Positions 3,119-63,529 of a DNA stretch of 64,000 bases are shown here, in pieces. The notes below the pieces were generated by a model. The model saw only the letters and a program-made list of their open reading frames with translations, made no database searches and was not told where the DNA came from. The stretch's first letter is position 1, and every line of letters begins with the position of its first letter. Position numbers and translations under genes: made by a program. Origin of the DNA: Utricularia gibba (Eukaryota > Plantae > Magnoliophyta); contig NEEC01000004.1 in NCBI GenBank assembly GCA_002189035.1, positions 4,464,001 to 4,528,000 of the forward strand, read 5' to 3'.

Positions 3119-4258
3119 CGGCACTCTATCTAGTGATCACTTGTCATTGAAGAGGGGTAGGGATATTATATCTAATAGAAACATATATTTTTATATTCAT
3201 TTATTTAATTTTATCAAAACAAAAAATTGTTAATGTTTGTTTATTTAAAATTTAAGATCGTTCATAAATGTTCATAAATACATATATTATTAATTATTAT
3301 ATTTTTTTATATTTCAAATAATTGAGAAATGTATAATATATTTATATAAATCAAATTTAATGTAACATTAATATTACAATCCAATAACGCTATTGCTTAT
3401 GTTTATTCATTAAAATAATTAAACATATATTTTATTTGTATTCGTTTGTTTACACTATTTAAATAAAAAAATAATTTTAATCAAATAAAGTACAATTCGA
3501 ACACGAATTATTAGTTTATTATAACATCCATAAACAATGGAGGGTAGGGGTCAAAGTTGGTTTTGGAATCCAAAATTTCCACCATGCTGATAAGCTTGCC
3601 TCATTAAATTAATCTCAAATGGAGATTAGAGAGTTTAATTACAATTTAGTGTTCTAATTTCAATAGTTTGACTTTTAACAGTTATGCATACCTACCAACA
3701 AACAGTGTAGGGGCATTTTGATCATTTTATAATGGTGTACCTCGGATTATGTTTGGAACAATTTATACTTATATTTAATATACTTAATAAATATTGTGCT
3801 ATTACATACATGTGAAATTTATTTTAAAAATAATATAAATATCGACCATCTCTTAGTTTTAATAAGTCCTAGAAATTTAAATTGCATTAAGAATCAGTTA
3901 CTAAAACAATTTTATTATCAAATATGAATGAATGTTTTAAAAAAATTAAAAATTTAGAATTATTTATTATTTTTAAAAACGTATGAAATTTCAGATTCTA
4001 ATTCCACATAATTGCTTTTATCAAATAGAGTGTTAGTTTATGTTTTTTAAAAATATATTTTTCTAACATAATGTTAATTAAAAGATTTACGAGAATGCCC
4101 TTGTTTGTGTCGATTGATTTTCCAACAACCTAATCCCTGGTTTTTTGGTGAGGGTTGGAATTTATGGAAAATAATATTGATTTATTTCTTGATAATATTT
4201 ATGGACCCACATTAACACATCATGTTTCATTACACAGTGTTGTTCCCGGCGCCGCCGC

Positions 4259-40424: not shown

Positions 40425-41013
40425 GTAATTAGTAATAATTCTTTAAATGAATATTGCGAATTAACTGTTCAGGGAATTGAATATTAAATAAGAATAATAT
40501 TCCCTAATATTAAGAATAAATACTTCAATAATTTCTCGTTCAATGAATGCAAGTTTAGACACAGGTGAAGAATTATTTCTGATTCCCCCACACAGCAGAC
40601 ACACACAACGAGTCGCGGGCCAGGTTCATGCATGTGGCCTCCATTAAAGCATCCGCCGCTCTCGCAAGATCCAATCTTTGCCCACTGAATTGAGAAGAGG
40701 GATACAAGGAAGGCAAGTGGTTTTGATTTAGTGGTGATCGTTTTAAAGGAGAGAGTGCTTGTTATCTGTAAGCTCTATCCATCACTTGGTACCCTGAACC
40801 TGAAATTTGGAGGTGCGAAATGTTGGGTTTCGAGTCATTGGTTGTGTTTGTGGGCTTGTTGTTCCATGTGGATTATTGGGTTTTGTGGGCTTGCATCATT
40901 TCGAGTCGAATTCCAGTTTCTGATAATGATCTGGGAATGCTCTCGGCTCTGCAAATTTCCATGTTTCAAGTTGATCAAATGCTTACTTTATGGTAACTTT
41001 TGTCGTTTGTAGA

Positions 41014-42570
41014 ATGGGGGATGCTGATTTTGGAGCTTACACGTATGAGAATCTGGAGAGGGAGCCCTATTGGCCTTCAGAAAAGCTCAAAATTTCTGTA
41101 ACTGGAGCTGGTGGATTCATTGCTTCTCACATTGCTAGGAGATTGAAGAGTGAGGGGCATTACATTATTGCCTCTGATTGGAAGAAAAATGAGCACATGA
41201 CTGAGGATATGTTCTGTCATGAGTTCCACCTTGTTGATCTAAGGGTGATGGATAATTGCCTCAAAGTTACCAATGGAGTAGATCACGTGTTTAATCTAGC
41301 AGCCGATATGGGAGGAATGGGTTTCATTCAGTCTAATCACTCTGTTATCATGTACAACAATACTATGATCAGCTTTAACATGATTGAAGCTGCAAGAATA
41401 AGTGGAGTTAAGAGGTAATCAATTAGTCTCTTAACCTTCTGGTTTATCCTCAAAATCAGATACTTATTCATCTTGCTTGATTTGGTTGTAGATTCTTTTA
41501 TGCTTCTAGTGCTTGTATTTATCCTGAGTTCAAGCAGTTGGATACAAATGTGAGCTTAAAGGAGTCTGATGCTTGGCCTGCTGAGGTTTTTCTCTCTGTA
41601 CCCAGTGTTAACTTCTGAAGTAATGTTACCTTGTCTAACTTATCTCCATCTCATCTTATGGGGCAGCCTCAAGATGCATATGGGTTAGAGAAGCTGGCTA
41701 CTGAGGAGATCTGCAAACACTACAACAAGGACTTTGGAATCGAGTGTCGTATTGGCAGGTTCCATAACATCTATGGCCCCTTCGGCACATGGAAAGGTGA
41801 ATCTACTTAGCTCTTAAAAGCTGTAGTAGTTTACAAGCATATTTGGAGCAGTATGTTTACCTAAAAACTTAGTAGCATTCCTGCACATAAGCGAAAAAAA
41901 GCTTGGATTTTGCAGGTGGGAGGGAGAAAGCTCCAGCTGCATTCTGCCGGAAAGTCCTCACATCCATTGATAAGTTTGAAATGTGGGGAGATGGACTCCA
42001 GACAAGATCTTTCACGTTTATAGATGAATGTGTCGAGGGTGTTTTAAGGTATGCATACATATGTTGCAACTCATCTTCATTTGTCTCATGTTTCATTCAG
42101 AACCTCCAAAAGCCATTTGTTTTGCACAGGCTAACGAAATCCGACTTCCGCGAGCCGGTTAACATCGGAAGCGACGAAATGGTGAGCATGAACGAGATGG
42201 CTGAGATCATTCTGAGCTTTGAGGAGAAGCAGCTTCCAATCCACCACATCCCAGGCCCAGAAGGCGTCCGAGGCAGAAATTCAGACAATACTCTGATCAA
42301 AGAAAAGCTGGGCTGGGCACCTTCTATGAAACTCAAGGTATCGAACCAGAAACTAGCTTCAGCTTCTCATCTGTCATACCAAAAAACCATGCTTAACTTG
42401 AATTCATTGCATAGGATGGGCTGAGAATCACCTACTTCTGGATCAAGGATCAGATAGAAAAGGAGAAATCTCAGGGCCTCGACGTGTCCGTGTACGGGTC
42501 GTCGAAGGTTGTCGGGACACAAGCGCCGGTGCAACTTGGCTCTCTCCGTGCTGCTGATGGCAAAGAATGA
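41014..42570 (+). CDS. GME: GDP-mannose 3',5'-epimerase
   Basis: Exons 41014-41414, 41492-41585, 41667-41796, 41916-42048, 42130-42337, 42415-42570; TGAGGFIASH, AADMGGMGFIQSN and C-terminal LRAADGKE. Confidence 0.97.
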
Positions 42571-42979: not shown

Positions 42980-43875
<896 letters not shown>

Positions 43876-44039
43876 TCCATGATGCTCTTTTTTTTTTTTT
43901 TCTTTTTGAATCCTTCAAGATACAGGAATTGGTTACACACAAGATGATGATGTATCAATTGATCAGATAGCTGAAAACATACTGCTTTATATCTGTGCTT
44001 TTTGGGACATAACTTGTTCCTTTCACTCGGTTCCTGCCA

Positions 44040-44465
44040 GTAGTAGGAGCATGAGCAGGCGCCATTCCATATATGAGTGATGAGAGCGAACACCAGCTCG
44101 ATTCACGCGCTGTGTCTCAGGAGTGGAGCCTCCTCCTCCCCTTCTTCCAAATCGAACATGGCATCCATAGCCTTTCATGGATGCCAGCTTTACAGTTCAC
44201 TGATCTTTCAGGTATATCTCTCTTCCACATGCCTGGACAAGCACGCCTAAACTAGGCTCACCTCGTTGAGATCCACAGATGCCTTCTGCATTAGGCGGAA
44301 CAACCTTAAGACCGCCATGGATGAGCAGCAGCGCTTCCATCAAAACCAGAGGTTGCTATGCTCATAGGCAGAGAGCATCGAGTTCCATGTGGCCAAATGC
44401 AGATCCTTGATTTGATCAAAGAACCACCTTACAATCTATCCTCAGTGCAGAACTCCGGGGAACCT
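44040..44465 (-). pseudogene. Decayed PLS-class PPR gene (At5g43790-like relic)
   Basis: Minus frame reads *G*IVRWFFDQIKDLHLATWNSMLSAYEHSNLWF*WKRCCSSMAVLRLFRLMQKASVDLNEVSLV*, with stops at 44444, 44438, 44342 and 44249. Confidence 0.75.
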
Positions 44466-46991
44466 AAAATAAGCCACAACGTTAAACCAGCAAAAAGCAA
44501 GCTACAAGTGGGAAATCATCGCATGATGTAATAGGATTTCAGCCAACTTCATGGTGAAAAATCGCAGTATCATTGGCGAATTTGGCCAAGAAATACATCG
44601 AACGATTAACTGGGTATGGGCTACCAATGAAGAAAAACGCGATCTTGAAAAAGTGAGCAGACGAAGAAACATGTACCTTGAGAACCCAGGAAAAAAAAAC
44701 TTCAATCGAGCATCCCAGATTAGATTCCATACCTCCCCCAACCGGACAAAAGGAACCATCTATATGAACTAGTTGCCTCGATTACAGCCGGCGATCCTCA
44801 GAGGGAATTCTCTAATCCTCGGCCTCAGCCCCAAAGCTGAACTGATTCGCGCCACCGGAGAGAAAGAAAATACCCCTCAATTGGGCAAAACGAAACTACA
44901 GCTCAAGATTGTTTGTGGCGGACCGGAACTGAGAGGACCCAAGTGCTGGAAAACCGCATTACCGGCCCATCTCTTCTGGTACACATTCGGGTCCCCGGTG
45001 GCGCCCAGTTCAAGAGTGAGGAATCTCGGTGGAGGGAAAAAGAAAAAAGGAGGGAGCAAGATACAGTAGTAGTAGGGGTGGGTATACGTTTCGTCCCTTG
45101 TATGGCCGGCTGATGCCGCAGACCGCCTGCGATGTTGGACTACGATGTCTCGAGAGACCAAGCAACCGGACGTGACAACACTAGCAGCACAAGCTCATTC
45201 TTCTCAGGGTTCACACCTCCGTCGTCTATGCCTTGTCCCCCGTAATCGCCATCTGGGCCCCCAATCCTCCAACCACCCAAATCTTCCTCAAAAACAAAAC
45301 AATACAAACACACAACACAAAGATGAAGAGAGGATACCACACGATTTATTCACTTTATATAGTTTAATTTTTAATTATTTTATTGTAAAAATAAAAATGA
45401 TTTGTTTTATAAATTATTGAATTTCTTAATTTTATATTTCAAGAAATTAATTAAAAATTATATTATTCATTTTTATATGATGTAAAATATATATTTATAT
45501 CATAAAATTAAATTTTGTAATATAATTTTATATTAACATATAGAATAATCTTACAATATTAAAATTGACTCTAATCCAGAAATATATATATATATTGAAA
45601 TTAAAAACACCACATAGAGAGAGAAATCCACGTTTTAGCTTATATTTCACCTATATTTTCGAATGAATGATGTTTTATAACTTTAAAAAAAGACTGTAAT
45701 ATGATACAAAATATACTATAATAATATTTAAATGATAATTTACATAATGCATTCAACCTCTAACACTTAGAAACCTTTGAAATGAAAAATTTGATAAGAA
45801 ATTATAAGAAAAGGGAAGAAAAAATAGAATTATTGAAAAACAAACCATTATAATAAAAATGAAAGTAAAATTCATTTTAATACAATAATGAGAATTTATA
45901 CAAAACTTATAATGTATGAAAAAAATGTATTAATTCGATTTTGTGGCAGTAAAATAAGAAGAAATGTAAAATACAAAATAGGCCTCGGAGAGCTTCTTCA
46001 CTGCAGGCCATAAATAGGAGTCGGTTGCATGTCACTTTTGCGGCACGTGACCGATCAGATCCTTCCTCACCACAAACTAACTGGGGACTCCCGCACCCAA
46101 TCAATTCCCATCTCTTTATTAAATTTTATTTTAAATCAATTTTAAAATTTATCATACGCGTGTATGAGAAATAACGAGATTAAATTCAACCATTTACGCA
46201 TTTTAAAACCTTAATTTATTTTAAATACTAATTTAATCTATTTATTTCCATGCCAATTTCCACGTCCGGTGTGGTCCACGGTAGGTACTTTGTGGACGCG
46301 GGAGTATCAAGTCCACTTGGTCTTCCATAACACAAAAGAAAAGTAAAAAGGTATTTTATTTATTTCTTTAATAATTTGGTTTCCCCAACACGGATGTGAT
46401 TCCTGACAAATCTAACGGCCATAAACGCTCTGGGTTGGGCTTACTGCACCGGCGACATACTATACATTTGACTTGGCGGCGCTGTCCACCGGAGGTGGGG
46501 CCGTCTGTGAAAAAGCAGCAAAAAAAAAGGTGACTTCGATGGAATCGGGCGGCTTCCTCAAATCTGCAAAATCGATCAATTCACGATTTTGAATCCACGT
46601 TTTGGTTTTCCGGTGTGGGACTAACCCTAATGGGGGAAACTGGCTTCCAGGCCGGCCGCCGGTGGCCAGGATTGGGGGCTTGCCGGGGACTCGCGGTGCA
46701 CAATGTGTATGAATTCTATCGGCTAGTACGGAAATCTGTGAGCTGCTAGAGATGAAGAAGGAGAGACAGAGAACAAAAAGGAAGGATTTTTATTATAAAA
46801 TATGAAAGAAAGATAGCAGTGCAAGAAACCCGAAGTGGGTTTCATCTATGGAACATGTCCCGACAGCACAATGGAAAGCAGAACATATCCATAGAAAAAA
46901 GAAAGGAAAAAGATTTTGCTATTCAAGTTTCCCGGCTGAGGAAGGATTAAAAAATTAGGGTTTTCAGTTTGTGTGTTTTGGTTTTTATTCA

Positions 46992-47092
46992 GACAAGAAG
47001 AATGAGATGAAGCTACCACATGATCTGATCTTTCCACAGCAGGAGGAGGAGAGTTTAGATCATGCTGGCAGCTTCATCAGATGCTCTTGCAA
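46992..47092 (-). ncRNA. MIR167: MIR167 precursor hairpin; mature miR167a-5p at 47056-47076, star at 47006-47026
   Basis: The reverse complement of 47056-47076 is TGAAGCTGCCAGCATGATCTA (miR167a); the 3' arm is AGATCATGTGGTAGCTTCATC; a pyrimidine-rich leader lies upstream on the minus strand. Confidence 0.96.
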
Positions 47093-50039
47093 GATAAACC
47101 CGCAGAATAAAAATCCAATCTTTAGAGGGGGGAGGAGAAGAAGGGGAAGAAGAAAGGAGAAAAAGGGGGTGCTCAGAATTGTGTGGGAGAGGATGGGATA
47201 TAAATAGGGGATTCCAGAGGAAGAGGTTTCGAAAGTAGAGAGTGGTTTTAGTGAATAAAAGGTAAGATATAAGTGAAGCAAAAGCAAGCACGAGAGCAAA
47301 TACACACAAAGAAAAGAGAAAAAAAAAAAAAAAAGAAGACGAAGAAGAAGAAGAATCGAAAGTCATCAAGGTTCCACTGGTTCTCAGTGGTCCCAATCCT
47401 CAATTCATTTTCAAAATTGAAAATAGCCTCCTACTCCATCACTAAGATTTTCCCTCTTACCAATCCCCCAATAACATTAAACACTTACCCATATTCCATT
47501 TTTCCTTTTTCTTTTTCCCCTTAGTACAGGGACACCGTGTCCTAAAGTATCCACCCCTTTTGGGACACCCCTCTCTCGACCCTAATCATGTGTCCAAAGA
47601 CAGCGAACCCACATCAGACCAACCAACCATACTACAGAATTCGGGGCTCAGACGTATGTATCTCAGTGGTGAGACTTGCTATATCAGTAAGCAATGGTAT
47701 TAATCTACATGAATCATTATCTGATATATGGTTATGGTGGTTGTGCTACATGACAAAGTCGTACATTTCATTTGTGGCAATGAGGATGACAGCACTTAGG
47801 AGACTAAAAAAAGGCCCCCTGAGAGACTAAAAAGCTTAGAGAATGGGCATATTCCGTGACTAAAAACGATTGATTTGTTCGGCACGGCTCATGCATCCAC
47901 TCCACTGCGCAAGGGGGCATCCGTCATCCACCTTTTGGTCTCCAGAACACCCTAGTGGTATACAACAGCACTTCTTCAGTTGGCGTGCGCACTGCGCCAG
48001 TTGTTAGAAAAAGAGATTCTGTCTCACCTTGCAAAAACAATAGCTTATTTATTCAACATCTCTTGTTTTTCTGTAAGATTCATGGAACTTGTTCACTGTG
48101 TTGAGACACTTGTCTGGTTATCAGGTTCAGCACAGTGTCCCGACGAGGAATCCCACCCTGAGAAGATGGTTTATTATGAATAGAGATGGAGGTGAGGGGA
48201 TGATGAGGGAATCCATGAAGGGGTTTTGTCGTATTGAAAGGAATAGAATCTGTTAGGTGTGCAGTTCAAATGTCATCCCTCTCTCGTTTCTTTCCAGTTG
48301 TATGCATCAAGCGAGCCAGCTGGGAGAGTTACAAATCGATTCCCGTTTACCTATATGCATTAAAAGAAAGTGACCTGTGATGGATTTTTTTTAATCATAA
48401 TTTCACCCCCTCCAGCTTCTGGTCTCTCGAAATTATTAGCAGAATACCGATGGCAATGCCTACGTTTGCAGATCTGATCTGCATTCAATTCTTCCTCTGA
48501 AACGAAAACCCTTGTTCCCCCTATCCCCGATTGGACGCCTGATTCCGTGATTAGGTGTGTGTCAAAAACCACATTATGGGGAGCTTCTGCTAATCATTTC
48601 ACCACCTCTGATGCGAGTGTCTCTCACGTTTAATCCAATACTCTACTGAAATTGAATCCAGAAAACACCCCAAGTTCTCAATTCTAAATATTAGACAAAC
48701 AGAGCTTCCATTTCTAAACTTTCGAAGTAGAAGCAAACTTGAGGGTTGATTTTTTTTCATGCTGGTTAAATTCGATTTCCAACGAGACAACCGTGAATGA
48801 AAGAATCAGGGGCAAGAGAGAGAGAGGGAGGGAAGGAGTTAATGTGGCTGGCGCGGGCGGCGGGTCGCCGGGGATCTGCTGATCTGACCGGCGACGCCGA
48901 CAGCTTTTGTCCGGAGAACAAGAGTAGATTTGCATTCAGAAATCCACATGTTATTTCTTATTTAACGCCCTCCCTCCTTCCTAACCCTAAATTCATTACA
49001 CATAAATACCCGCATTTAATCCAATCAACGGAAGCTGTCCCCACTCAACTCGACTATTAAGATTTCGATTCTCATTTATTGCGCAATTAAATAAATTGTA
49101 TATTTATTAAAAAATAGAAAAAAGGAATCAATTAAACTCATTGCATTTTGCATGTAGACACAATGAATCTACTTTATAGCGTTTTAAAATCAGGTTCAAA
49201 TTATTCTCCCATTTATGTATGCCTCTAGGTTCAATTTATTTCAAAAATATTATATAAAAAAAAATAATTATCTAATTTAATATTTCTAATTTTCTTAAAA
49301 AATATTGAATGAAATCTTAAAAAAGGAATAGGAACTAACCCATTATTTTAACCTATTTTTAGTTTTTTTAAAAGTAAAAAATAAAAAGTATAAATTTTTT
49401 ATAAAATTCAAAATAAAATTGTGGGTATTCTTCAAAATCATTTTTTTATATGAAATCCACACAATTAAAAATGTATCTAAAAAGATCAAAAGTAACCTAT
49501 TTTTGCTTTTAAACACTATCTAGTATAAATGGATGACAAAAAATTTACAAAAAGCCAATCCTTATTTTCTATCCCACACAAAAATTATATAAAAATATGT
49601 TTTTTTCTTTTTTGAAAGATCCTAATTTTAATTTTTAAAAGTAAAAAATATTTGGAATTGGAGTTGGGGTTGGATGAAGCAAAAGGAGGGCAGAACTAGA
49701 GATGACAGTCACATAAATATGTATAAATATTAAAGAAATGGGGGACTCAAGGTGGTCCATAAATCCTTATTGTGATGGCTACAGGGTGACAGCAGAAGGG
49801 GCTGCCCCAAGGGCTACAATCTTTGTATTGAACATAGGCTGGTCCTCATCCCACTCCTCTTCACACAAAATCAAATCAAGATTGGTCAATATCTTATTTT
49901 ATCTCATACATTCACTCCAAAATTTTTAATTCAGAATGATCCATTTTTTCACACATCATCAAAGATGACAAGATTTCTAATACATTCCAGAATCACACAA
50001 AGATTAATCCAACAGGTTAGGTTTCATTTGGATAGCCAC

Positions 50040-50130
50040 CCCCATGGCTCATTGCAGTTTGATGAGGTAGCTAGCAGCATGCAGCATCTGCTCTTGATGA
50101 TTCTTTCATTTGGGAAGATAGAAACCCCAT
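50040..50130 (-). pseudogene. AGO10: Candidate relic of the ARGONAUTE10 N-terminus
   Basis: CAA ATG AAA GAA TCA TCA (a) GAG CAG = QMKESS/EQ, then LIKLQ*AM, versus recalled AGO10 MPIRQMKESSEQHLVIKTHLQNTM. Syntenic slot fits; the match is short. Confidence 0.4.
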
Positions 50131-50256
50131 TGGGTGGTTCGGTTCATATTAGGGTTTATGGAGGAGGAAGAAGGCAACCTGTGTTAGGGTTGACAGAGGA
50201 GGTTAGTGATTGGATGGATGGTTCTAAGGGTGAGTGCACAAGTGAGTGAATGGATC

Positions 50257-50305
50257 GGGGTGAAAAGGGCGATGGGGAGTGCAGGGCAGGGCGGGGCAGG
50301 CTGGG
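50257..50305 (+). other. Potential G-quadruplex (seven G3+ tracts)
   Basis: G runs at 50257, 50267, 50274, 50284, 50289, 50293 and 50303, with 1-6 nt loops. Confidence 0.7.
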
Positions 50306-50625
50306 CGGCCAGCTGAAGGAAGTTAATGGGGTGCTGTTCATTAATGGTTTACTGGCAGCCCCAGCCATGAATAGAAAAAGACAAGGTATTTAAAGCTTTG
50401 CTCATTGCTTCTCGTTATGTCATTCACAAGAGGACTTCATAAATCTGCGACCCAGGAGCAGCAGTCAAACACACTGCATTTTTATTGATGCTGCGCGCAG
50501 CTGCTGCCCCTCCTACATTTAATCATCTTCTTCTTCCTCTTCCTCCCCCCAGCACCAAATTTCGTACTTGCCTTTTTTCTTTTTACAGCAGAAGAGACTG
50601 CGTGCTCGGCAGTCGTTGACGTAAA

Positions 50626-50709
50626 TGGGCCGGGCCTGCTTTGGGAGGAGCTCACCAGGCTATTAGCAAAAGCTCAGGAATGGAGGAGGGTGGCCCAAAC
50701 ACAGGCCCA
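50626..50709 (+). promoter_or_regulatory. Site II element cluster upstream of the DMC1 relic
   Basis: TGGGCC at 50626; GGCCCA at 50692 and 50704. Confidence 0.5.
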
Positions 50710-50817
50710 GAGGTTTAAAGTAACGTCTAGTTCGAAAGTCGGTGGGCGCTTGCCGTCTCTTTGCCGCGCTCGTGTTCTTCCTGGAAAACTACCTATAGAG
50801 TGATTTGGTATTCACAA

Positions 50818-51532
50818 ATGTTTGCTGCTTTTGAATTTTTTTTATCAAGTTTGATGTATAGGGATGAAGAACCGAGTCCGCTGTTCCAAATCGCTGATAT
50901 ACAGTGCGATCGAAGATGAGGAGGAGTTTCGAGAAGCAATCGATTGACCTAAGCTTCTTTTTTTAATTTTCCGGGTTTCCTATTGTTTTCAGTCGAATTC
51001 CGTGCTGTTTTCTGATTTTGGAAATGGGAATTCTTCGTTAACACTGATATCTTGATTGTTCATTTTTTCCTGATGGCAATGTGGATTCAGAAGACCTCGT
51101 TAAGTAGTAATGGGTTAACAACTGGTTATGTCATGCAATGCTGGGACTTGAACTGACTACTGAATGACGTAGAGATGCACACCAAAAAAAATTGAATACT
51201 GAATGCCCAAACTATGAGTTGTAATGCATATCAACTTGCCTATGTTAACCAGGACTTGGCTCTGGGATCAGGGGGCTGTCTATGAGGCCAATGTAGATTA
51301 CCTGTAGACAAGATAGCGGGCAAAGGCTAACAATGGGTTTTCTATGTATTTGATGCTCCAGATCCTCCTGAACCTTAAGCGATATCCCTTTCAGTCTTCA
51401 AGTTCTTGAAACGTGCTTTTAGCAATCAAATTCTAGAGTTGAATGAATAGTCAGTCATTGCTTGGGCAAGTTTCCTTAGCTTCACAAGTTTTGCAGGTTG
51501 CTCCTCGTGGAATTGCAGATGCAAGGGACTGA
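50818..51532 (+). pseudogene. DMC1: DMC1 meiotic recombinase pseudogene, internally deleted
   Basis: Collinear fragments: MFAAF (50818), DEEPSPL..IEDEEEFREAID* (50863-50947), MHTKK (51175-51189), GIRGLS/EANVD/VDKI (51264-51315), GKG*QWVFYVFDAPDPPEP*A (51319-51381), AT-AC intron, VLQVAPRGIADARD* (51488-51532). Confidence 0.93.
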
Positions 51533-51870
51533 TGGGGGTTCTCCCTTTGGGTAGCCTCCACCACTCAGTAACTTCTTGCTGTCAAATTCAGATATGTAAG
51601 GGCAGATGAATATGGCGACCATCATTCATGGAAACATTACACAGTTGCTCTTGCATGCATCAACTTTCCAGGCAAGACTACTTTCCTCTCTTCCAGATTC
51701 TGTAATGCTTCATATTGTTGCTCTAACAGATCTGTGATTAGAAGGCATTCAGTAGATGTAAAACACTGCATAAAGAAAGCATACGATGTACAAGGCATGT
51801 TTGTCATAAACGATGAAGTAAGTTTTTGTGTAGGTGAATTAACTGGGAGTAGGATAGCAGAATATCTTAA

Positions 51871-52277
51871 GGCTTCGTTTAGTTTGTGGGTCCGAGTTTA
51901 ACTTGGGTGTGAATTATTTGGGTATTTTTAAACTTATAATCATGAGTTTTGTGGAAAAATGTGTTTGACCACCCGATTAATATTATTTAGATTTTTTATT
52001 ACATGAGTTTTGAATGCTGATTTATAAAAGATGTGTTTACCATTATTTATGTATGAAATTACTTAATTTCCACTTAAAATTGAAAAATAAAATATATTAT
52101 AAGATAGGATATATTTAAACATACCTTTGGATGGGTTTATATAAACCCATATTTATGGGTTACTGATTAGTTTATCTAAGCTTATAGAATAAATTTATAT
52201 TTTACAATAACCCACGTATCAATCATTCTAAAATATTAAATTTATCTATAAACATGGTTTGCGAACCAAATTTGGCC
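51871..52277. mobile_element. Tourist-like (PIF/Harbinger) MITE
   Basis: TAA on both flanks (51868-51870, 52278-52280); degenerate TIRs GGCTTCGTTTAGTTTG / GGCCAAATTTGGTTCG; AT-rich interior with a 20-bp palindrome at 52131-52150. Confidence 0.5.
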
Positions 52278-52765
52278 TAAATCATATAAGATAATTTTAA
52301 TTTTTTTATGTTATATTAGAACATTTTTTTGTATAAATAATATTCACTTTTTTAATATTATGTAAGATAATTTCAATTTTTTTCACTCGATTTCTTTATC
52401 ATTCTTCATTTTTTAAAATAATTATTTTTTTTACATCCTTCTTTTCGATTTATTCAAATAAATCGATATTTGATGTATATTTTTAAAAAATTATGTACTT
52501 TTAATTATAATTTATTTAAAATGATATTATTGTTTAACATATTTTTATACTTCCTAATTATCAAACAAAATCTAATATTTAAAATATTTTTATTTCTCAT
52601 GTAATATAGCTATTAAAACATTATCTCGTATATCAATTTTCCCGAAACAAATGCAAATTGAGATCAAAATGCAGAATGCGAGAAACATGATCGTAAGTAT
52701 AAAAAATTATTCATAGTGCATAAAATAGAAAATCAAGATGGTTATTTTTTTAAATGGCCAAGTTT

Positions 52766-53035
52766 CACGTGGCATAACGTATGGCTTCAGTTGAGTTTCG
52801 AGCAATAAGATTGGAGCCTAGGAATGAAGCAGAAGTTGGTGTCGTTGCAAACTCCCTATTGGGGGTTGGAATCCAAGGTCTCCCTTGCTCTTGATTTAAA
52901 AACAAAAAACAAAACAAAGGTGGAATTTTGATCACCACCACTCAGGAGGAGGTACTAGAAGTTTCCGGTGGCCAAGTCAGGTACGTGGAAGTTGTTCCGC
53001 TTTCCATTTTGAGATGCTGCGGACACCGACGTGTC
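52766..53035 (+). promoter_or_regulatory. G-box/ABRE cluster in the ELIP promoter
   Basis: CACGTGGC at 52766, ACGTGG at 52983, ACGTGTC at 53029. Confidence 0.55.
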
Positions 53036-53154
53036 CGCGGAATATCCATGTGTTTGTTTGTTGGCACTTTTTCATTCTCTTTAAATTCCCACCATCCGGC
53101 AGCATCCACCATCAACTCCAGCCCAGATTTGCAGTCCAGTATACATTTCCGGCA

Positions 53155-53749
53155 ATGGCAATGGCAATGGCAATGTCCAGCAGCATCCTCTCATTCGTTC
53201 GATCAAATCCCTCTGTTGGGCTGCCACCCAAGCACACGATGAAGAGGATTTCAAATTTCCGAGTTCGAAGCATGGCGGACGTAAGTTTTGTCTTCAATTC
53301 CTCTCTAGTTTTAAGAAACCCACAGGAAATATTGAATCAAAGTTGGATCTTGATGTCTTTTTTCAGGGACCCGAGGATGCTGTACCCGAGGCGCCACCAG
53401 TGAAGGCGGCACCTGGGTTTTCCCAGATCCTGGCGTTCAGTGGTCCCGGCCCAGAGAGGATCAACGGTAGGCTGGCGATGATCGGTTTCGTGGCGGCGAT
53501 CGGCGCCGAGTTGATCAACGGACAGGATTTGCTCCTCCAGCTGCAAAACGGCGGCGTGTCGTGGTTCTTGGGACCAGCGCATTGCTCACCGTGGCCTCTT
53601 TGTTGCCGTTGTTCAAGGGAGTGACGGCGGAGTCTGAATCCGGCAATGTAATGAGCTCAGATGCCGAGCTTTGGAATGGCAGATTTGCGATGCTCGGTTT
53701 GGTGGCTCTGGCGCTCACCGAGTTCGTCAAAGGAGGAGCTTTGGTTTAA
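53155..53749 (+). CDS. ELIP: Early light-induced protein; 1-bp frameshift at ~53570 (sequencing error or pseudogene)
   Basis: Exons 53155-53280 and 53367-53749; [19 protein letters not shown], then the frame shifts at WFLG to [44 protein letters not shown]. Confidence 0.9.
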
Positions 53750-54068
53750 AGAAGCCCTCACCAGAATTCCAAGTGAAAAGCAAAACTTTTTGTTAGCTTT
53801 AGTACAGGTCGTATGTATGAATTCTACATGTGGAATGATATTTGCAAGCCCTGGTTTTTATTACAGAAAACCACCCATGACACACATTAGTTACATACTT
53901 CATCCCTTCAAGCTGACAAGCGTATGGTGGAGCTAAGCTCCATCATTTTATTGTTCTACTTATACAGTGCCGTAACAGTGCTACCGTTTCTCTGATCTCC
54001 AAGGGGCACATCAAAGCTGAGGCACAGTTTTATCAGATGTGCCACATAAGGGAGGGGGAGATGAGTTT

Positions 54069-55679
54069 TCAGGCAGAAGCACCGATCCCCTGTCTGTCCC
54101 CCAGCTTCTGCACGAATGCCTCAATGTATCGTTGCCTAGGACGTGCCAATAGCCCAGCATTAGACAACATATCTTAACCAGAATTGTGTGTATATGTAGG
54201 CAAGATGCAGCAATGAAGATGAAAGAGAGAAGATGGAAGAGCACCTTGCAGGGAGATGATCATGGGGTCGGTTATATGGAGTCCAGACAGGCTCACCAAC
54301 AAAGAGGCGCATAGCCTGCAGTGATAAACGAATGATTCTACTGTGTTTGGAGAAGTTTACATTGAAGCAATGGAGGCTGGTTCGATGAGAGAAGGATCCT
54401 TATAGGGTACATCACCTTGATGTAGTTGTCAGAATCAAGTGTGAATCGGTGGTATATTCCGGCGGGGAAGACAACCAGAGCCCCTTTCTTCACCCAAACG
54501 CGGATCCAAGCTTCATCATGGTCACGCACATCAAAATAACCTACACTTTCAGAAAGCCATTTAGATATACATATAAAGAATCAACAAGAGCATCATGGGA
54601 AGCAGTAAGTAGTGGCAGTGATTGAGAATATACCACTTCCTGCAAGGCAGTAGCGTATCTCTTCATCAATGTGCAGGTGCTCCTCGTAGAAGCTCTTGAT
54701 CTTCTCATTGTAGTTTGGCATCTTCTCTTTACTTACTTCGCAAAAATCCTACAGATTAATCACGTAGAATCCTATAATACGAGCCATCTACCATGGAAAA
54801 TTTTCGCAAACATATTGATCTTCCAGGTAGCTCAAACAAAATATACCATGTAGGTGTATCCACGGCTTTCACGAATTTTCTGCAATTCTGGATCTGTTTC
54901 GTATTTGTCTGCATCCAACTTCCAAGCAAGCACTCCAAGCTCTAAGAAATTTCCAGGAACAAATCATCATTCAGAAAGAAGCATTTACAAATTCTCGACT
55001 TTGGAAAGTAACTGAATTCCTATATACTCAATCTATTTAACTCAGGAAAAGACACAAGCATCTAACTCGATCAACAATGATATGTTTAAAGTCTCAATTC
55101 ACGAACTGCAACATAGGAAACTTCGGAGTATGCATTTTCACCTTCAAGTTTTTCAAAGGAAACGAACTCCTTGGGATTCCGGTGATGAGGGAGTCTCTGA
55201 TCCTCCTCACTGTCATCCATATACCAAGCTTGGATAACTTCCTCCCGCTCATCCTGCATCGTGAGACCGTATTCACATTATCCTCAAGAAGACTCTCTAT
55301 GTCTCTATCAAATCATGAGATCAGGGAAAGATCATAAGGAGCCAAACACCAAATTCATGAGCAATAGACGCATACACCTCATGAAAAACCGTAACTTGCA
55401 ATGAAAAGGGTCTCATTCACCTCATGAAAAAAACCAACCAAGCACATACCAAATAAAAAACTCAAGTAAATCCAATAGACCCAAAAACTGGGCGCCTTTA
55501 TCTTCTTCCCAGAAACTAGATACCTTCAATCACGGCAAATATACTAACTAAACTAATAACCAACCAATAGAAGACTCGTGCCGGCAGCGCCCATGAAACA
55601 TTGGACATCCGAACAATGCAATTCCAGAACGCTAACTCTCATATACCTCCGATGATCTTACCTTGCACAGAGAACCCAT
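54069..55679 (-). CDS. ARD: Acireductone dioxygenase (methionine salvage)
   Basis: Exons 55679-55662, 55253-55142, 54941-54847, 54748-54634, 54540-54416, 54315-54245, 54135-54069; [11 protein letters not shown] and GIYHRFTLD metal ligands. Confidence 0.96.
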
Positions 55680-55871
55680 AATCCTCTTCGCGCTGAAATC
55701 TTCCATCACGAAAAGCATGTGAAAAAGGCGTATAAGAGTTTGCCAAGACGGCTATTAAGTACTAAATTACCCCTCACCCAGCTGCCAGTGTTGCTGGTTA
55801 TTTCGTCATTTACTTGTATGCACGGGGAGTAGATATTTATAATGTTGTAAGCAGTTGTTTTTAAAATAAGC

Positions 55872-56530
55872 ATGAAAGAGACTTGCCGGCGATACCACCG
55901 GCGCCCACCGTGTTCGCATTTTGTTTTTGCTGACTCCTACATTCCGTAATCCTGTTCATTGGTGTTTTTGAAAGTTGAATATCAACTCATTCGAACGGTA
56001 ATTTTGGTGCAGGGAAATCGAGACGACAAGTTGTTGGGAGCCGCAGCATTTGAAATTGAAAACTCGGAGAAAGATATAGAGGAAAGTGACCACAAATTGG
56101 ACATATCCCACAAGGTGTTCGACAAATTGAGTGAAAGAAATTGATTACTTGGGCAAACAAAACCAAGCCCAGAAAGAGACACATTTTAAATTCACGGTGT
56201 CAGCCGCCAACCTGCGCCCTGCAGTTATTTCTTTGCTTCTATTTCTTCTTAATCTCGTCCTCATACATCTCCTTCACTTGTCTTTTATATTTCTACGGTA
56301 CGGTGCTCCCTCCATTTACCCAGTTCTCTTCATTATGTCTTTGCAGATTCACCATGAGGGTCTGAACAGGGAGAAGAAGTCACGTTTGTGTGAAGTTTTT
56401 CCTGCAAAAAAACTGTTGGTCTATCTGAAGCATGGTTGAAGGCAAAACGAGGTCCCCTCCCTCCCTTACCCTGTACTAGACATCCATTATTGAATTTATT
56501 GCAGGTGGAAGGAACAGAACAGAACAGTAC
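55872..56530 (+). pseudogene. Unidentified multi-exon relic (PEAPOD/TIFY4 candidate; also a PPR-like word)
   Basis: ETCRRYHRRPPC (55878-55913), EGLNREKKS after an acceptor (56356-56382), KVFDKLSERN (56113-56142); several tgcag acceptors and no intact ORF. Confidence 0.35.
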
Positions 56531-57120
56531 AGTAACCACCAATTTGTAGCACTCTCCAAGTTTTTACCAAACTTCACATGTGCATTGTTTCTCCCCAAAG
56601 ATGTAATCTTTGTATCCCTTTGGGGTGCTGTTTATTCTGATTTGAGGTGTGGATTCATGGGTTTCTTAGATTATGAATGAACTGTTGATGTCAAAACAAA
56701 ACACACACCGTCAAAGCAGTGGAAAAATTCTACCTTGTTGTCTTGTCTTGACGTCTGCGGGTTCACATTTCGTGACTTTTTGTATCAAAGTTTCCTGCTT
56801 TATTCCTGCTGGTATTTATTGCATTGGACTTTGTGGTGGAAGTTGATTAGTCTGAAACTCTCATCTCATCTCCAACTGTAAATTAAATTCAGGGGATTGT
56901 AGATTGATGATGGGTGATGATAACATGAAAGTTATACTTTTTTATTGTGGAAGCCGACACGCACAAATAAATGTCTCTGTCCCATGACATCTTCACTCAA
57001 TCACCCACACGCACTCAGCTCATTTGACATAGACTCACTTATCTTCTCTTCTTTTTTCTCTTCTCTAGTTGTTCTTCTCTCTGTTCCTTCTTCCTGTCTC
57101 CTTTCTTCTTCTAGATTCCG

Positions 57121-57568
57121 ATGGGGTGGCTCCGCCGTATCTCCGTGGCGTTTGTTCTCCTCACCGCCGTGGCAGCTCTGCGTTTCGACTCACAACCACC
57201 ACCTGAACTCAGTAAACCCGTTCACTTACTCATTGGCACTGACTCAACCCTGAGTCTCTTTGCATATTCATCCAGAAGCACATACAACGCACATCACCGG
57301 CTCGTCTTTCCCTAGTCTTCTGATCTGGAATTCCACCTTCCATTAACTCCTCTCGTTATCCCTTTCAGGCTTGGCGGATGAAAGGGGCGTGGGGCGGCGG
57401 CGAGCCAGCTTGCTGGGGTCGTGGCCACCGTCCTGCAGATTGAAATGCGGGCGGTGCTGGCCGTGCGTGGCGGTGCACGTGCCGATAGAACCCGGGATGA
57501 GCATAGCGATGGAGTACTATCCCGAGGCATGGAGATGCAAGTGTAGAAACAAGCTCTTCATGCCTTAG
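57121..57568 (+). CDS. EPFL: EPIDERMAL PATTERNING FACTOR-LIKE peptide (EPFL4/5/6 clade)
   Basis: Exons 57121-57211 and 57369-57568; signal peptide, then GSWPPSCRLKCGRCWPCVAVHVPIEPG..EYYPEAWRCKCRNKLFMP with six Cys. Confidence 0.93.
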
Positions 57569-58837
57569 GAGCAGCAGGAAAAATATTATATTGTTTTTTT
57601 GCCTTTTTTAATCGCAATATTTTGTTTTTAAAGCATTTTATTTCACTTATTAAAATTAAAATCCATGAATAACGAACACATATATTATATTGTAATATTT
57701 TAATTAAAAAAAAAGTGGAAATGGATTCAATTATTGCAATTAGTCACTAATAAATTCGTACATTAAAATAATGGGGTATGTTCCTCAACCGCAGGCATGG
57801 AAGGGGTTGGTTGCACTTTGCATCAAATCCACTTTAATTTAATAATAATTATTATTCATTTTAATCAAATAAACCATTTTCGTCTTTTCCTGTATTACCG
57901 AATAACATCCAACTAATTTATTCCTTTATTCAAAAAACAATGAGGTGTTCGTATAATGACCCTAGAATTATTAATTAAATAAATTACGAAAATACGTTAA
58001 TTAAATAAATCACGTTGTTGACAGTCGCAAACCCCGGCGGCAGGGGCGGCCCACCTGCCCCCCGATCATCAAGAGAAGCATGGGATCCATGGCCGTGAGA
58101 TGACGGAAATCGTATCGGCCGGCGGCGCCTCTTTTGAAATCAGGGAATCGGATTTATAACCAGACTCCGATGATGGTCCGACGGTGTAGACTACATAGTG
58201 TAATAACATATGGTATGTTTAAATTAAACATCCAATAGATCTGATTAACACGTGTGTAAAACATAATTACATAATAAATATGTATTACATTGTTAAAAAT
58301 AATTTTAATCAATTATTAGTAATTTAAAATCTTTTATATATATGATTATATTATTTTAATTTTCTAAAGTAAAATTATTTGTTCTAATAATTATATTCAA
58401 GTTGAACTAGTCTTTTTGTATGTGATTAAAAAAATTTTATTGTAAAATCAAAACAAAGAAAAAAATGCTGGTGAAGGTTGTAAGGGATGAGTTGCTCCCA
58501 CACTGGAATATTAATTAGATCTATTTTTCATATGCCAAATCTAATATATATCTTTTTTTAAATAGTATTTTGAAAAAATTTTAAAAATTATTTTTACTTT
58601 TTTAAAAAATAGAAATAAAAAGTAAAATTAACGTATTCTATACTTTTCGAAAAATAATTTTGTATTACAATTTAAAAAGTATTTTTGATCAAATTAATTT
58701 TACGATTGATAATATTCTAAAATAAAATTATTTTTATTTGTTGAAAAATAAAAATAAACTTCAAAATTTTTTCAAAACAGTGATTTAATTTAATTGAAAC
58801 TCATACTACTATCAAATTCATTTTATTTATTTAAATC

Positions 58838-58940
58838 ATCATGTTGAAATTAATATCTCAATGGAACACATATGTCAAACTCAAATATCATGTTGAGATT
58901 AATAGATGGATGGAACGCGTACGTGAAACTCAAATATCAT
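58838..58940. repeat. Diverged 49-bp tandem duplication
   Basis: Units start at 58838 and 58887 (atcatgttga.attaata....atggaac....a.gt.aaactcaaat). Confidence 0.7.
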
Positions 58941-59446
58941 CATAAGTTTGAGCTGAAACACCCTCCACTGGGATTGGATCAAAGGGACTGATTTGCATTA
59001 CACAATCCATCATAAGTTCCGGTGAGTGCTCGACTGGGGACCGACGCGTGGCGGAGGATGGGGCCTGGGGAGCAGTTGGGGCGAGCCCGGCGCCACGTGA
59101 GGCTGTGTGGCACCTGTGCGGCACCCTACAGGGAGCCCTTTTGTATGGACCGCGCGTCTCATCATGTGCGCGGTCACCCTTTTTGGTGGAGCCATTCATT
59201 CGCTCTCTCTCTGGTTTCGTGTGCAGCCCTCCCTCGGCACACAATCGGACCCCTCGCCCCATCAATCACCAACACACTGGTCATTAATAACACATAATAA
59301 TAAAATATATAATATATTATAAAACAATACTACCAGATTGAGTTTAATTTTTTTTAATATAATCTATATTTTTTTTGTATATTTAAATTTCAAGTATATT
59401 CATGACAACCCATCATATTCTTGAATTTCAACACAACAAACCTGAA

Positions 59447-59697
59447 ATACTTGTTTGGTTGATGTGTTTTAGGTATTAGTGGGTTTATATTATTTGATTT
59501 TAACTAAACCTAAATATGCGGGTATAAAAATACTCATAACCTCTATTAAATATACATATATCCATATTGGAGGTTATTACATGAATATGATAATTATTAT
59601 ACCCATATATAAAGTATAATTATAACTACATACCAAACAACACGATTTTATTAAACCTACCATAAACCAACCTTATACCATCATATCAAACAAGGAT
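59447..59697. mobile_element. Possible Tourist-like MITE
   Basis: Left CTTGTTTGGTTGATG versus right (reverse complement) CTTGTTTGATATGATG; AT-rich interior; no clear TSD. Confidence 0.35.
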
Positions 59698-60883
59698 AGT
59701 TATATGATGCGGTATGTTGCGCACCACTTCCACCGGCTCAACTGGTACTCAAGATCTGGAAGTCGGTCCGCGGAAACTCTGTGGATTTGGCCAGTCAAGG
59801 TCAACTGGTTGCTTTAAATAGCCCCATCCTCGTATTGCGTACACCTGCATTTTATTTCCCAAAATACTCTTACAATTAAAAATATCAAGAATTGTAATAA
59901 ATGAACTCGTGTTCTAAACACACCTACATTTAGAGCAATGCCAGTTTGATTGATGTGTTCTTACTCATTCAATTATATTTATTTAAACTTTTAGAGTTGA
60001 TTTGATAGTAAAGTATTTGAATATAGTATAATTAATTATGTATATACTTAATTATAAAGCATATAACAAATTTTGTATTTTATATATGAGAATTGAGGTT
60101 AAAATATAACAGTTGAAAATAATGTTTAATAGTTATTAGTAAAGATAGATATATAATAATTTTTAAAATGATATAAATGATAAAACATGTACTTATGTAA
60201 ATATAATTGATCTACTCTCTTCTCCCTCCTCCTTCATTGGTATATATCACTTTAATACTCAAAAAATGAATATGTTATTAATATTATCATATAAGATTGA
60301 CATATATATACTAGTTAATAAAACAATATTTATGTGTAAACTTGGTATAAATTTTATATACTATACTATCAAACAACTTGTCATTATATATGAATTTTCT
60401 TAGGCAACTGAGTTTTAAATTTAATTTGTTTTAAGTATATATTTGCAAAATTTACATACTAAAGCACTTTCAATTACAATTAAATGAAGTAAACGTCATT
60501 TTATATATTACATATTACAGTATTTCAAATAAAAAATATCAAATATTTCAAATAAATTAAATATTTATCATTGAATAAGATGTATGTCATAAGATATCAA
60601 TAGTTATAAATAATTTTTTTCAATATATATAGTAATTTAAAATTTAAATTAATATAAGTAGGTAATTTATTTATTTAATATTTTAAATAAATAACATATT
60701 TCATTTAAACAATATAATAAATTTTTGTGTACGTTTTCGGAATAAATAAATACAACAACGGGCACAAGGGGCCCAATATTGGACATTAATCATTTTAAAT
60801 GAAAATTTAATTATATTAATTAATTACGCATTACAACCTAATCCAAGAATTAAACGACCCAGCTGCAGCTCTTTGAAGGAGAA

Positions 60884-63000
60884 TTAGAATGTGTGTCTGT
60901 TGCTCCTCTGTTGTGCCGTCTCCAGCAACTTTGCGATCCCCTGCGTCCACGCCTGGTAATCCCTCTGGTTCTTGCATTCGAACTCCACGAGGCCGCGGGA
61001 CACCGTCCGCAGCCCGAAGTAGCGACGCTGGTCTCCTCCTTCGAGAAGGTGACGCCCCGGCCATGCCGGAATATCTTTCACTAACTCCGATACCACGTCT
61101 GAAAAGAATGAAAGTGGAATGAGATGAGCCATTCTGTTGCTTTTAGTCGAGCTCTTTATGCTTTTCTTCAATCCGATAACCCCATGTAAGAAACTACTCA
61201 CTCTTTTTCTTCTTTGTCACCGTCCCTGCAACATGCCTGCTCTTGGTTTTCAGCATTACCTGCGTTGTTTGTGAAGTGTTTTTTGGTTGTTTTGGTGGGA
61301 TTACGTGTGGAAAAGTGAGGTTATTACCTGACCCAATTTGTTGATGTAAACGGACACAACCTTCCAATGGAGATCGCCTGAAGTGGAGAACTTGATCAGC
61401 ATCAGCTGTTTGGTTTGGAGAAACAGGGGATTGGAATTTGATTGCAGAAGAGATTACCGTTTCTGGTTCGCTTGAGAAGCTCGCAGCCTCTAGCGAGAAG
61501 TTCCCGATTACACACTGCCAGAAAATCTTGCTCCGGGGTGTCGCCTCCGCGGCCGCCGGTCCCGTTCCAGACATCCTTCAGCGTCCTGGCCTTTAAGGTC
61601 GTGGCCGCCCGAAGAGCTACGAAATGTACTTGGTTATATACTGCAAGAGTGTAAAAGGATGGAATTATTGGTGATTGTAGTGTGGAACGGAGGTTATACC
61701 AGTTGCGGCGGCGGCGGTGAGGGTCATGATGTCGCTTGCGGAGGAGCAATTTACAGCTGAACTCACGACAGAAGCTAAATGCTCCCGCTCCGCCCCCATC
61801 GCTTCCGCCGTCTCAACGCATTGCGCTGCGACCAATGTGGCTGCGGAAGCTAGTGCTCGATCAAATTTCATGGCCTGTTCCTCCTTCGCGGAGGAAGAAG
61901 CCGTGGATGCGGCGATTGCAGCAATCGCGGACGCTAACCCGGCGACGGAAACCGCCGCGTGGAGATGCGCATTGTGGGCTCTCAACTCTTCCTTCTTCTT
62001 CTCCTTACGGTCCTTCAACCATCTCCCAACAGTTTTATTGCCCCCGCCGTTTGCGGCGACGGAAACAGTGTACTTCATCGGAATACTCGCCTGCCGGTGA
62101 TGCTGTAAGAGATTTTGTCCACGTCAAGGATATGAATCATGTGGGCGATACAGATCACGCGGATTATTAAAAGCTCCGGAATACCCCACCGGAAAACTGA
62201 TCGAAAAATCGTAAGAATTTAACAAGAACCACAAAAACATAAATGGTGGGTGTCATTCCTAACTTCATAAAAAAAAACAGCGATTCTGAAAGCAAAACTG
62301 CAACTATCTTCTCCGGCATTGCCCGAATCCCTGATTTACCATTCGTCGGAAATTCCGGAGCCCATAAAAAAAACAAAGCTTTAAGAATCCCTGACGGTCC
62401 ATTTGTCGGAAATGCCGAAAAAAATGCTCAGAAATGCCGGAAGGTAAAAAAGAACAATTTTGAAATGGATTGAAAAAAGATAACCAAACCTTTGGATTAC
62501 CGATTTCTGATGGCGAAGCAGGGGGGCTATCAGAGAGAGATCCACAACTCAGACCGCCGTTGAGGGTGCCGCTGCTGTGAGAAATCCGACCGGAAGTTCG
62601 TGGTGATGCATCCTGCTGCAGATATTGTACCTGCCCATCATGAAATACAGCTGGAATTTTAGGAACCAGAAAATCATCACAGAGCAATCTTTCGAGTGAC
62701 CCACAGCCTCAAAAAAAGAAAATAACTCACAGACTGAGACATGATCCTTTCCAGTACAACCATCGAAGTCTCCGACGTAGCGAAGGAAAACAGGTTAATC
62801 GAGGAGCGCGCAGCCTCCGGCGACAACTGTTCATGTATGACGTCGACGCAGCTCCCACGGGGACTACTCTCTTCGGTCAACAGAGCTCGTGGAGCACCAG
62901 CTTGTGAGATTTCACGGGCAGAGAGGCTCCAAGAACGGCAGAGAAACTCCATGGGCTCCGGCAGCGGCCGGAAAAGTGGATGCAGATGCGGCTTCTCCAT
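60884..63000 (-). CDS. FORKED-like / VAN3-binding protein (DUF828 + plant PH domain)
   Basis: Exons 63000-62731, 62615-62490, 62102-61700, 61616-61458, 61377-61328, 61259-61202, 61098-60884; [41 protein letters not shown] and [13 protein letters not shown] motifs. Confidence 0.93.
62325..62417. repeat. 33-bp imperfect direct repeat (period 60) in FORKED-like intron 2
   Basis: gaatccctgatttaccattcgtcggaaattccg versus gaatccctgacggtccatttgtcggaaatgccg. Confidence 0.7.
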
Positions 63001-63529
63001 GAAAGCGGGGTTCCGCGAAGTGAAATGACAGCAGCAGCCGCAGGATGACGGAGAATCCTTATACAGATACCAAGGAGCCGCAACGGAGAGAGAAGGGAGC
63101 GAGTGGGGGGGCCGAACTGCCACTGGAGTTGAGTGCAGTGGGAACTGGGGAAGTAAAATTACTCAGAAAACGAGGTTCCATTTATGACGCAATTAATCAA
63201 TTAATTCGTTCTCCCAATCTTTTTTTCCCTAATTTAAAATAAATTGATAAATACCAAACCCCTTTTTATCTTGTTTTTTAATTCTGAAACTAATACAAAA
63301 AATAAAAAATTAGGTAAATGGAATAATTTAATCCGGTAAAAACGTAAAAGAGGAATTAATGAGGAATGTGACATGTCGGTGACTGAGATGCCCTACGCTG
63401 TCACTTGTATTTTTCAATCCGCCGTCCCCCAGCCGTACGCCGCCGTCACAGACCCCAATCCAATAATAATAATAATAATAAACACCTCAATAATTCATTG
63501 ACAGCAACATGCTGTACGTGCGACATTAG

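Follow-up and report, generated by a model that had tools for sequence, protein, structure and literature searches.

The 64-kb stretch of the Utricularia gibba genome analysed here (contig NEEC01000004.1, positions 4,464,001 to 4,528,000; hereafter the window, counted from its first letter) most probably represents one heavily thinned copy of a conserved gene block, made up of GME, ARFC1, MIR167, DMC1, ELIP, ARD, EPFL and FORKED-like, and a single gene fossil can be demonstrated in it, an unprocessed pseudogene of DMC1 left by ordinary post-duplication fractionation. We give this interpretation a probability of about 0.8. An earlier note on the same DNA had described an ordered "graveyard" of shrunken relics of five genes (an At5g43790-like PPR gene, AGO10, DMC1, PEAPOD and possibly CLH2) standing in the slots that synteny predicts. 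Its proposal of deletion-driven fractionation after duplication remains reasonable for DMC1, but the graveyard was overstated, since only one of the five named relics is demonstrable.

The DMC1 pseudogene

DMC1 (At3g22880 in Arabidopsis) is a meiosis-specific recombinase of the RecA/Rad51 family. A tblastx comparison of the entire window with intact DMC1 from Oldenlandia and Brassica gave matches only at 51319-51399 and 51488-51532 on the plus strand (E 3e-4 and 7e-5 with the Oldenlandia gene, E 3e-5 with the Brassica gene). Together with exon-by-exon DNA alignments, scored against shuffled controls, and a retained AT-AC intron, these matches confirm the DMC1 relic of the earlier note as a pseudogene at 50854-51532 (+), upstream of ELIP. 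Its five exon pieces form a collinear chain against Brassica DMC1 with a score of 85, compared with 44.6 +/- 3.8 in shuffles (z 10.7), and the similarity to DMC1 coding exons is beyond chance.

The individual pieces (Table 1) differ in strength. The exon 1 relic, at 50866-50943, aligned to Brassica DMC1 with a z of 5.5 (none of 300 shuffles was as good) and to Oldenlandia with a z of 3.9, IEDEEEFREAID pairing with IEDEEDLFEAID of the Oldenlandia gene; it opens with an ATG and a short 21-codon frame, and a stop is met after the frameshift. The traces of exons 2 and 3 are weak when taken alone and are collinear with the stronger pieces. In the penultimate exon, GKG*QWVFYVFDAPDPPEP*A aligns to 21 residues of intact DMC1, with two stops (asterisks) within 21 codons, while the last-exon relic VLQVAPRGIADARD aligns to VFQITPGGIADAKD, its stop codon included. 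Between these two exons the last intron begins with ATATCC in the relic as well as in Brassica (locus L008, ~4036-4120, +) and Oldenlandia (locus L004, ~2845-2940, -), and it ends with CAC in both intact genes and with CAA in the relic, where a branch-site-like box, TCCTTAGC, lies upstream of the 3' end. Given the ATATCC and CAC ends in the intact genes and the upstream box, the intron is of the AT-AC, U12-like type, and its terminal base has been lost in the relic.

Compared with intact DMC1, with which it shares an aligning exon 1, penultimate-exon end and last exon, the AT-AC intron and the ELIP neighbour, the relic is without exons 4-12. These exons, which carry the RecA core with its nucleotide-binding motifs, gave only null-level scores in 50700-51600. 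Since there is no RecA-type ATPase core, and the reading frame is broken by a frameshift and stops, the sequence is a pseudogene and not a functional member of the DMC1 family; no recombinase could be made from it. Like the intact DMC1 of Brassica, it stands upstream of ELIP and in the orientation of that gene, and as in Oldenlandia it is adjacent to ELIP. An intron has been kept and the position is ancestral, as is typical of an unprocessed syntenic pseudogene.

With regard to the origin of these pieces, one could argue that a fragment of DMC1 was copied in, through transposon capture or as a retrocopy, given that ~680 bp are present of a gene that measures 2.6-3.6 kb when intact, and that their orientation relative to ELIP is unlike that in Oldenlandia. 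However, the pieces are not a retrocopy, since an intron, AT-AC signals included, and the distance from exon 1 to exon 2 have been kept, and both position and orientation relative to ELIP are those of the intact Brassica gene. Neither a flanking repeat nor a terminal inverted repeat borders the pieces, and this part of the window has no repeated sequences; self-comparison and tRNA scans of the studied region returned no repeats and no tRNAs. We therefore regard a copied-in fragment as extremely improbable.

Our preferred explanation, loss in place, runs as follows. The DMC1 copy stayed at its ancestral position, on the same strand upstream of ELIP, where an internal deletion, or a series of them, took exons 4-12 and with them the whole RecA/Rad51 ATPase core. 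The ~680 bp left behind comprise exon 1, the traces of exons 2 and 3, the final part of the penultimate exon, and the last exon together with the AT-AC intron before it, and these pieces have since drifted neutrally, acquiring a frameshift and three stops and losing the terminal base of the intron. The earlier claim that relics were shrunk by deletion while their ends were kept is borne out here, with both ends kept and the middle deleted, and finds no support for the other four genes. Its dating of the decay as recent is not supported: the decay is substantial, with changes in the relic at 17 of the 82 sites that do not vary between the two intact DMC1 genes, and with two stops in a stretch of 21 codons.

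The truncated remnant might instead still be in use, as a non-coding transcript or through a short peptide from exon 1, given that the 5' region is kept and an ATG opens the 21-codon frame. Yet every retained exon carries a frameshift or stops, the terminal base of the intron is gone, and the same 17 of 82 otherwise invariant sites have changed, so that continued use appears very unlikely.

DMC1 is required for meiosis and is normally single-copy. Since it is essential, the genome must presumably contain a functional copy at another locus, and the copy in the window would accordingly be a redundant duplicate, lost by fractionation after duplication. In its syntenic position, retained intron and combination of internal deletion with point mutations, the DMC1 relic resembles the unprocessed pseudogenes that remain in plants when a whole-genome duplication is followed by fractionation, as described for Utricularia gibba and for many paleopolyploids, and it shows no essential difference from them. 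It is a fresh instance of a well-known type of feature, a small and clear case of a gene that has lost its catalytic core and kept its two ends. As such it offers a clean, well-anchored view of how a minute plant genome discards the redundant duplicate of a gene essential to meiosis, deleting the core and leaving the ends, along with a rare AT-AC intron, to decay. The outcome is expected paleopolyploid biology and opens no new question.

Table 1. Genes, DMC1 pseudogene pieces and spacers in the studied part of the window
Feature	Position	Strand	Observations
GME gene	40990-42424	+	directly upstream of ARFC1
ARFC1-type small GTPase gene, intact anchor	43061-43875	+	two coding pieces; Pfam Arf E 1.2e-18, 1.5e-43
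Spacer A (PPR relic of the earlier note), no gene remnant recognised	43876-46996		40 stop-free pieces of at least 40 amino acids
MIR167 precursor hairpin	46997-47087	-	mature miR167 at 47057-47076, 5' arm
Spacer B (AGO10 relic of the earlier note), no gene remnant recognised	47088-50853		43 stop-free pieces of at least 40 amino acids
DMC1 pseudogene, exon 1	50854-50943	+	ATG, frameshift, stop
DMC1 pseudogene, exon 2 trace, 3' half, weak, frameshifted	51138-51188	+	p ~0.04 alone
DMC1 pseudogene, exon 3 trace, weak, frameshifted	51262-51297	+	p 0.24 alone, not significant
DMC1 pseudogene, penultimate exon, 3' third	51318-51381	+	two in-frame stops; DNA alignment z 10.4
DMC1 pseudogene, last intron, AT-AC (U12-like)	51382-51487	+	5' end ATATCC; final base changed
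DMC1 pseudogene, last exon with stop codon	51488-51532	+	z 10.5; whole-window blastn E 0.008
Spacer C (DMC1 relic to ELIP), no DUF3700/p24 remnant	51533-53149		tblastx, Pfam
ELIP gene, intact anchor	~53150-53749	+	top matches Lamiales ELIPs, E 1e-24
ARD (acireductone dioxygenase) gene, intact anchor	54244-55253	-	five exons match the ARD genes of Melastoma and Cucurbita at 70-88%; Pfam ARD E 1.8e-19
Spacer D (PEAPOD relic of the earlier note), upstream region common to divergent ARD and EPFL	55254-57120		38 stop-free pieces of at least 30 amino acids
EPFL4/5-type gene, intact anchor	~57121-57568	+	Salvia and Andrographis EPFL E 2e-24; Pfam EPF E 1.2e-18
Spacer E (possible CLH2 relic), slot fits synteny, no remnant found	57569-60892		carrot gene, Pfam
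FORKED-like gene, intact anchor	60893-63123	-	Pfam Auxin_canalis E 4e-54

A thinned copy of a conserved eudicot block

The window shares gene order and orientation (GME, ARFC1, MIR167, DMC1, ELIP, ARD, EPFL, FORKED-like) with a block conserved among eudicots, represented by At3g22810-22950 and At4g14690-14750 in Arabidopsis and by Solyc09g082600-082990 in tomato. The anchors GME, ARFC1, MIR167, ELIP, ARD, EPFL and FORKED-like stand in this order and all appear intact; GME aside, these are the anchors of the earlier note, whose presence and order were upheld. The same order agrees with loci from Salvia, Andrographis, Oldenlandia, Brassica, Melastoma, Cucurbita and carrot, and with the published gene numbers of tomato chromosome 9.

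In tomato, these published numbers place CLH3 at Solyc09g082600, a "guard cell differentiation" gene, presumably EPF-like, at 082620, three ARD genes at 082630-082650, an HSF at 082670, ELIP1 at 082690, ELIP2 at 082700, AGO10a at 082830, an ATP sulfurylase at 082860 and GME2 at 082990. Judging from their numbers, ELIP2 and GME2 could be separated by as many as 28 gene models, and the corresponding interval in the window holds only ARFC1, MIR167 and the DMC1 fossil. The window is thus a collinear, much thinner copy of the tomato block, without most of the genes between ELIP and GME, AGO10a and the ATP sulfurylase included; HSF, dymeclin and chlorophyllase are also absent in comparison with the conserved eudicot block.

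Among the outgroup loci, Oldenlandia has DUF3700(+), DMC1(-), ELIP(+) and dymeclin(-), and Brassica, in three assemblies, DMC1(+), DUF3700(-), p24(-), ELIP(+) and HSF(-). Relative to ELIP, Oldenlandia (L004, 2829-6397) has the DMC1-DUF3700 pair inverted when compared with Brassica (L008, 1577-4165) and the window. The Salvia locus reads dymeclin, HSF, ARD, an 8-kb gap and EPFL; that of Melastoma reads LOR, an unknown gene, MIR167(-), ARD, ARD, EPFL, FORKED-like and IQD; and that of Cucurbita HSF, ARD, EPFL, FORKED-like and IQD. In Andrographis EPFL(+) is followed by FORKED-like(-). The carrot locus consists of an aldo-keto reductase, EPFL(+) and chlorophyllase(-), and a second carrot copy of EPFL is followed by a Bax-inhibitor-like gene.

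Taken together, outgroup synteny supports the expected slots of DMC1, AGO10 and chlorophyllase and contradicts that of PEAPOD. Seven of the expected neighbours for which genomic references were compared (DUF3700, p24, HSF, dymeclin, LOR, aldo-keto reductase and chlorophyllase) have left no detectable trace in the window, which indicates that complete removal, rather than a lingering fossil, is the rule in this block. The absence of an HSF, as reported earlier, was confirmed with three references from three species, none of which gave a match.

Search for further gene relics in the spacers

The five spacers between the genes were cut into stop-free pieces (at least 40 amino acids long in spacers A and B, at least 30 in C, D and E), giving 161 distinct pieces, each of which was scanned against Pfam. 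None matched a PPR, Argonaute, PAZ, Piwi, tify, Jas or chlorophyllase family, and the best E-values, 0.0012-0.05 per protein, belonged to unrelated families, as expected by chance.

Spacer A had been assigned to a relic of an At5g43790-like PPR gene, an assignment that we could not sustain: no PPR family was found at E<=1 in its 40 pieces, only chance matches. For AGO10 (At5g43810), said to lie in spacer B, the slot is right: in tomato, AGO10a (082830) is flanked by ELIP (082700) and GME2 (082990), corresponding to the interval between ELIP and ARFC1/GME in the window, but the relic itself found no support. The 43 pieces of spacer B contained no Argo, PAZ or Piwi family at E<=1, a result obtained with family models only and hence of low sensitivity, and PDB searches with the four most suspect pieces returned no Argonaute chain at E<=10. 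A 157-amino-acid piece of this spacer received a language-model (Atlas) recognition of 1112, within the range of shuffled sequences. A segment at 47956-48180 (+) bears a weak, ungapped likeness to the C-terminal end of Argonaute when judged by eye; it was treated as a chance resemblance, Pfam and PDB giving it no support.

Spacer C, between the DMC1 relic and ELIP, gave only chance-level tblastx scores with the DUF3700 and p24 genes of Brassica and Oldenlandia, and nothing in Pfam (spacers C and E together yielded 40 pieces). For spacer D, neither the PEAPOD (At4g14713/20) relic nor its slot could be upheld. The 38 pieces matched no tify, Jas or PPD family, a PEAPOD motif scan of the window and three loci found none, and no segment of the spacer is conserved with Salvia or Andrographis. 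The interval between ARD and EPFL measures 1.9 kb in the window, 1.4 kb in Melastoma and 2.7 kb in Cucurbita; it is gene-free in the latter two, and no PPD gene stands there in Salvia either. In tomato the EPF-like 082620 and the ARD gene 082630 are consecutive models with no PPD between them, SlPPD2 (Solyc09g065630) being located beside CLH2 in a different block of chromosome 9, and the second carrot EPFL locus also has no PPD. The PEAPOD slot is therefore specific to Arabidopsis, and spacer D is no more than the upstream region that two divergent genes have in common.

The possible CLH2 (At5g43860) relic of spacer E is comparable to the AGO10 case, in that the slot agrees with synteny and the relic does not appear. 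Chlorophyllase(-) lies 3.6 kb downstream of EPFL(+) in carrot, and tomato CLH3 (082600) is two gene models away from 082620, while in Andrographis, Melastoma and Cucurbita no chlorophyllase stands beside EPFL. The carrot gene (L011, 14049-15336), compared with the window and with spacer E alone, scored at most 24-25 bits (E >0.5), which is chance level, although the same procedure does detect the DMC1 relic, and Pfam found no Chlorophyllase match in spacer E. The G+C-rich piece at 58930-59300 had a language-model (Atlas) recognition of 1186, again within the shuffled range; the two pieces scored in this way, in spacers B and E, were the longest.

Exon-like islands of higher G+C content occur at 44000-45400, 47100-48950, 49750-50850 and 58930-59300, with 42-48% G+C as compared with 24-31% in the A+T-rich stretches between them. 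Several frames are open at once in these islands, which match no family, structure or outgroup locus that was compared.

A reading in which the spacers form an ordered run of relics shrunk by deletion, three or more of PPR, AGO10, DMC1, PEAPOD and CLH2 being present in their syntenic slots, could draw on the reality of the DMC1 relic, on the tomato position of AGO10a between ELIP and both ATP sulfurylase and GME2, on the chlorophyllase slot of carrot and tomato, and on the G+C islands. It is nevertheless quite unlikely, considering that no Piwi/PAZ/Argo, tify/Jas, PPR or chlorophyllase signal emerged from the 161 pieces, that carrot chlorophyllase was without a match under a method that recovers DMC1, that Salvia, Melastoma, Cucurbita and tomato have no PEAPOD gene between ARD and EPFL, and that the seven other expected neighbours are traceless. 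Arabidopsis synteny thus over-predicts relics, and even the right slots, such as those of AGO10 and chlorophyllase, may hold nothing recognisable. In the interpretation that we prefer, with DMC1 as the only demonstrable fossil, the other spacers would be ordinary intergenic or promoter DNA, or remains decayed past recognition.

Several points weigh against this interpretation. The negative results for AGO10, PEAPOD and PPR rest on family models applied to stop-free pieces, an approach that is blind to relics with stops every 10-20 codons; the DMC1 relic itself, whose pieces between stops are mostly shorter than 20 amino acids, would escape the Pfam and PDB tests, and a PDB search with its last piece, of 29 amino acids, indeed gave no match. 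Relics of AGO10 or of other genes, as decayed as that of DMC1, may consequently lie in the spacers, and the G+C islands could be remains of other lost genes. Furthermore, we infer the intact DMC1 elsewhere in the genome from the role of the gene in meiosis, and DMC1 is inverted relative to ELIP in Oldenlandia, the block having been rearranged in some lineages.

The islands could alternatively be untranslated regions or non-coding transcripts. That they are what erosion has left of the ends of several more lost genes, AGO10 and chlorophyllase perhaps among them, so that the block would record a stepwise, deletion-driven fractionation in which ends outlast middles, seems to us unlikely; were it true, the series could serve to gauge the size spectrum and tempo of genome-shrinking deletions.

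MIR167 and neighbouring genes

The window contains an exact 20-mer of mature miR167, which matched in none of 100 shuffles and is located in the 5' arm of a stable hairpin (fold of -43 kcal/mol, z -5.6), as expected of a MIR167 gene. The Rfam model RF00640 scored 60.6 bits (E 9e-11) on this hairpin, compared with a gathering score of 100 bits, so that the scan at the gathering threshold returned no match and MIR167 emerged only below it. The model favours the plus strand (60.6 bits) over the minus strand (35.6 bits), yet the exact mature miR167 is on the minus strand; as both scores are below 100 bits, a default Rfam scan misses the gene. At the Melastoma locus (L005, 3016-3035, -) an exact miR167 adjoins the ARD-ARD-EPFL-FORKED-like run in the same orientation as in the window, which makes MIR167 an old member of the block.

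The window is extremely gene-dense, with approximately one gene per 3 kb, as suits the very compact genome of a bladderwort-family plant, and A+T-rich spacers between G+C-richer genic segments. Exons were searched one by one. The closest proteins to the EPFL and ELIP exons come from Lamiales (Salvia, Andrographis, Striga, Buddleja and Sesamum), and no match was identical. Exons 2-3 of ELIP are 75-78% identical to the ELIPs of Buddleja and Oldenlandia, the Buddleja locus consisting of tandem ELIPs only, and the FORKED-like exons are collinear with the genes of Andrographis, Melastoma and Cucurbita.

ELIP and ARD are arranged tail to tail, with ~490 bp between them (53750-54243). Dymeclin, HSF or both are found between or beside ELIP and ARD in Salvia, Oldenlandia and tomato, and both are traceless in the window. 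Finally, chlorophyllase, HSF and PPD genes recur as neighbours in tomato, at Solyc06g053960/053980, Solyc09g065620/065630 and Solyc12g005300-007070, which suggests that these neighbourhoods are old paralogous copies of one ancestral block.

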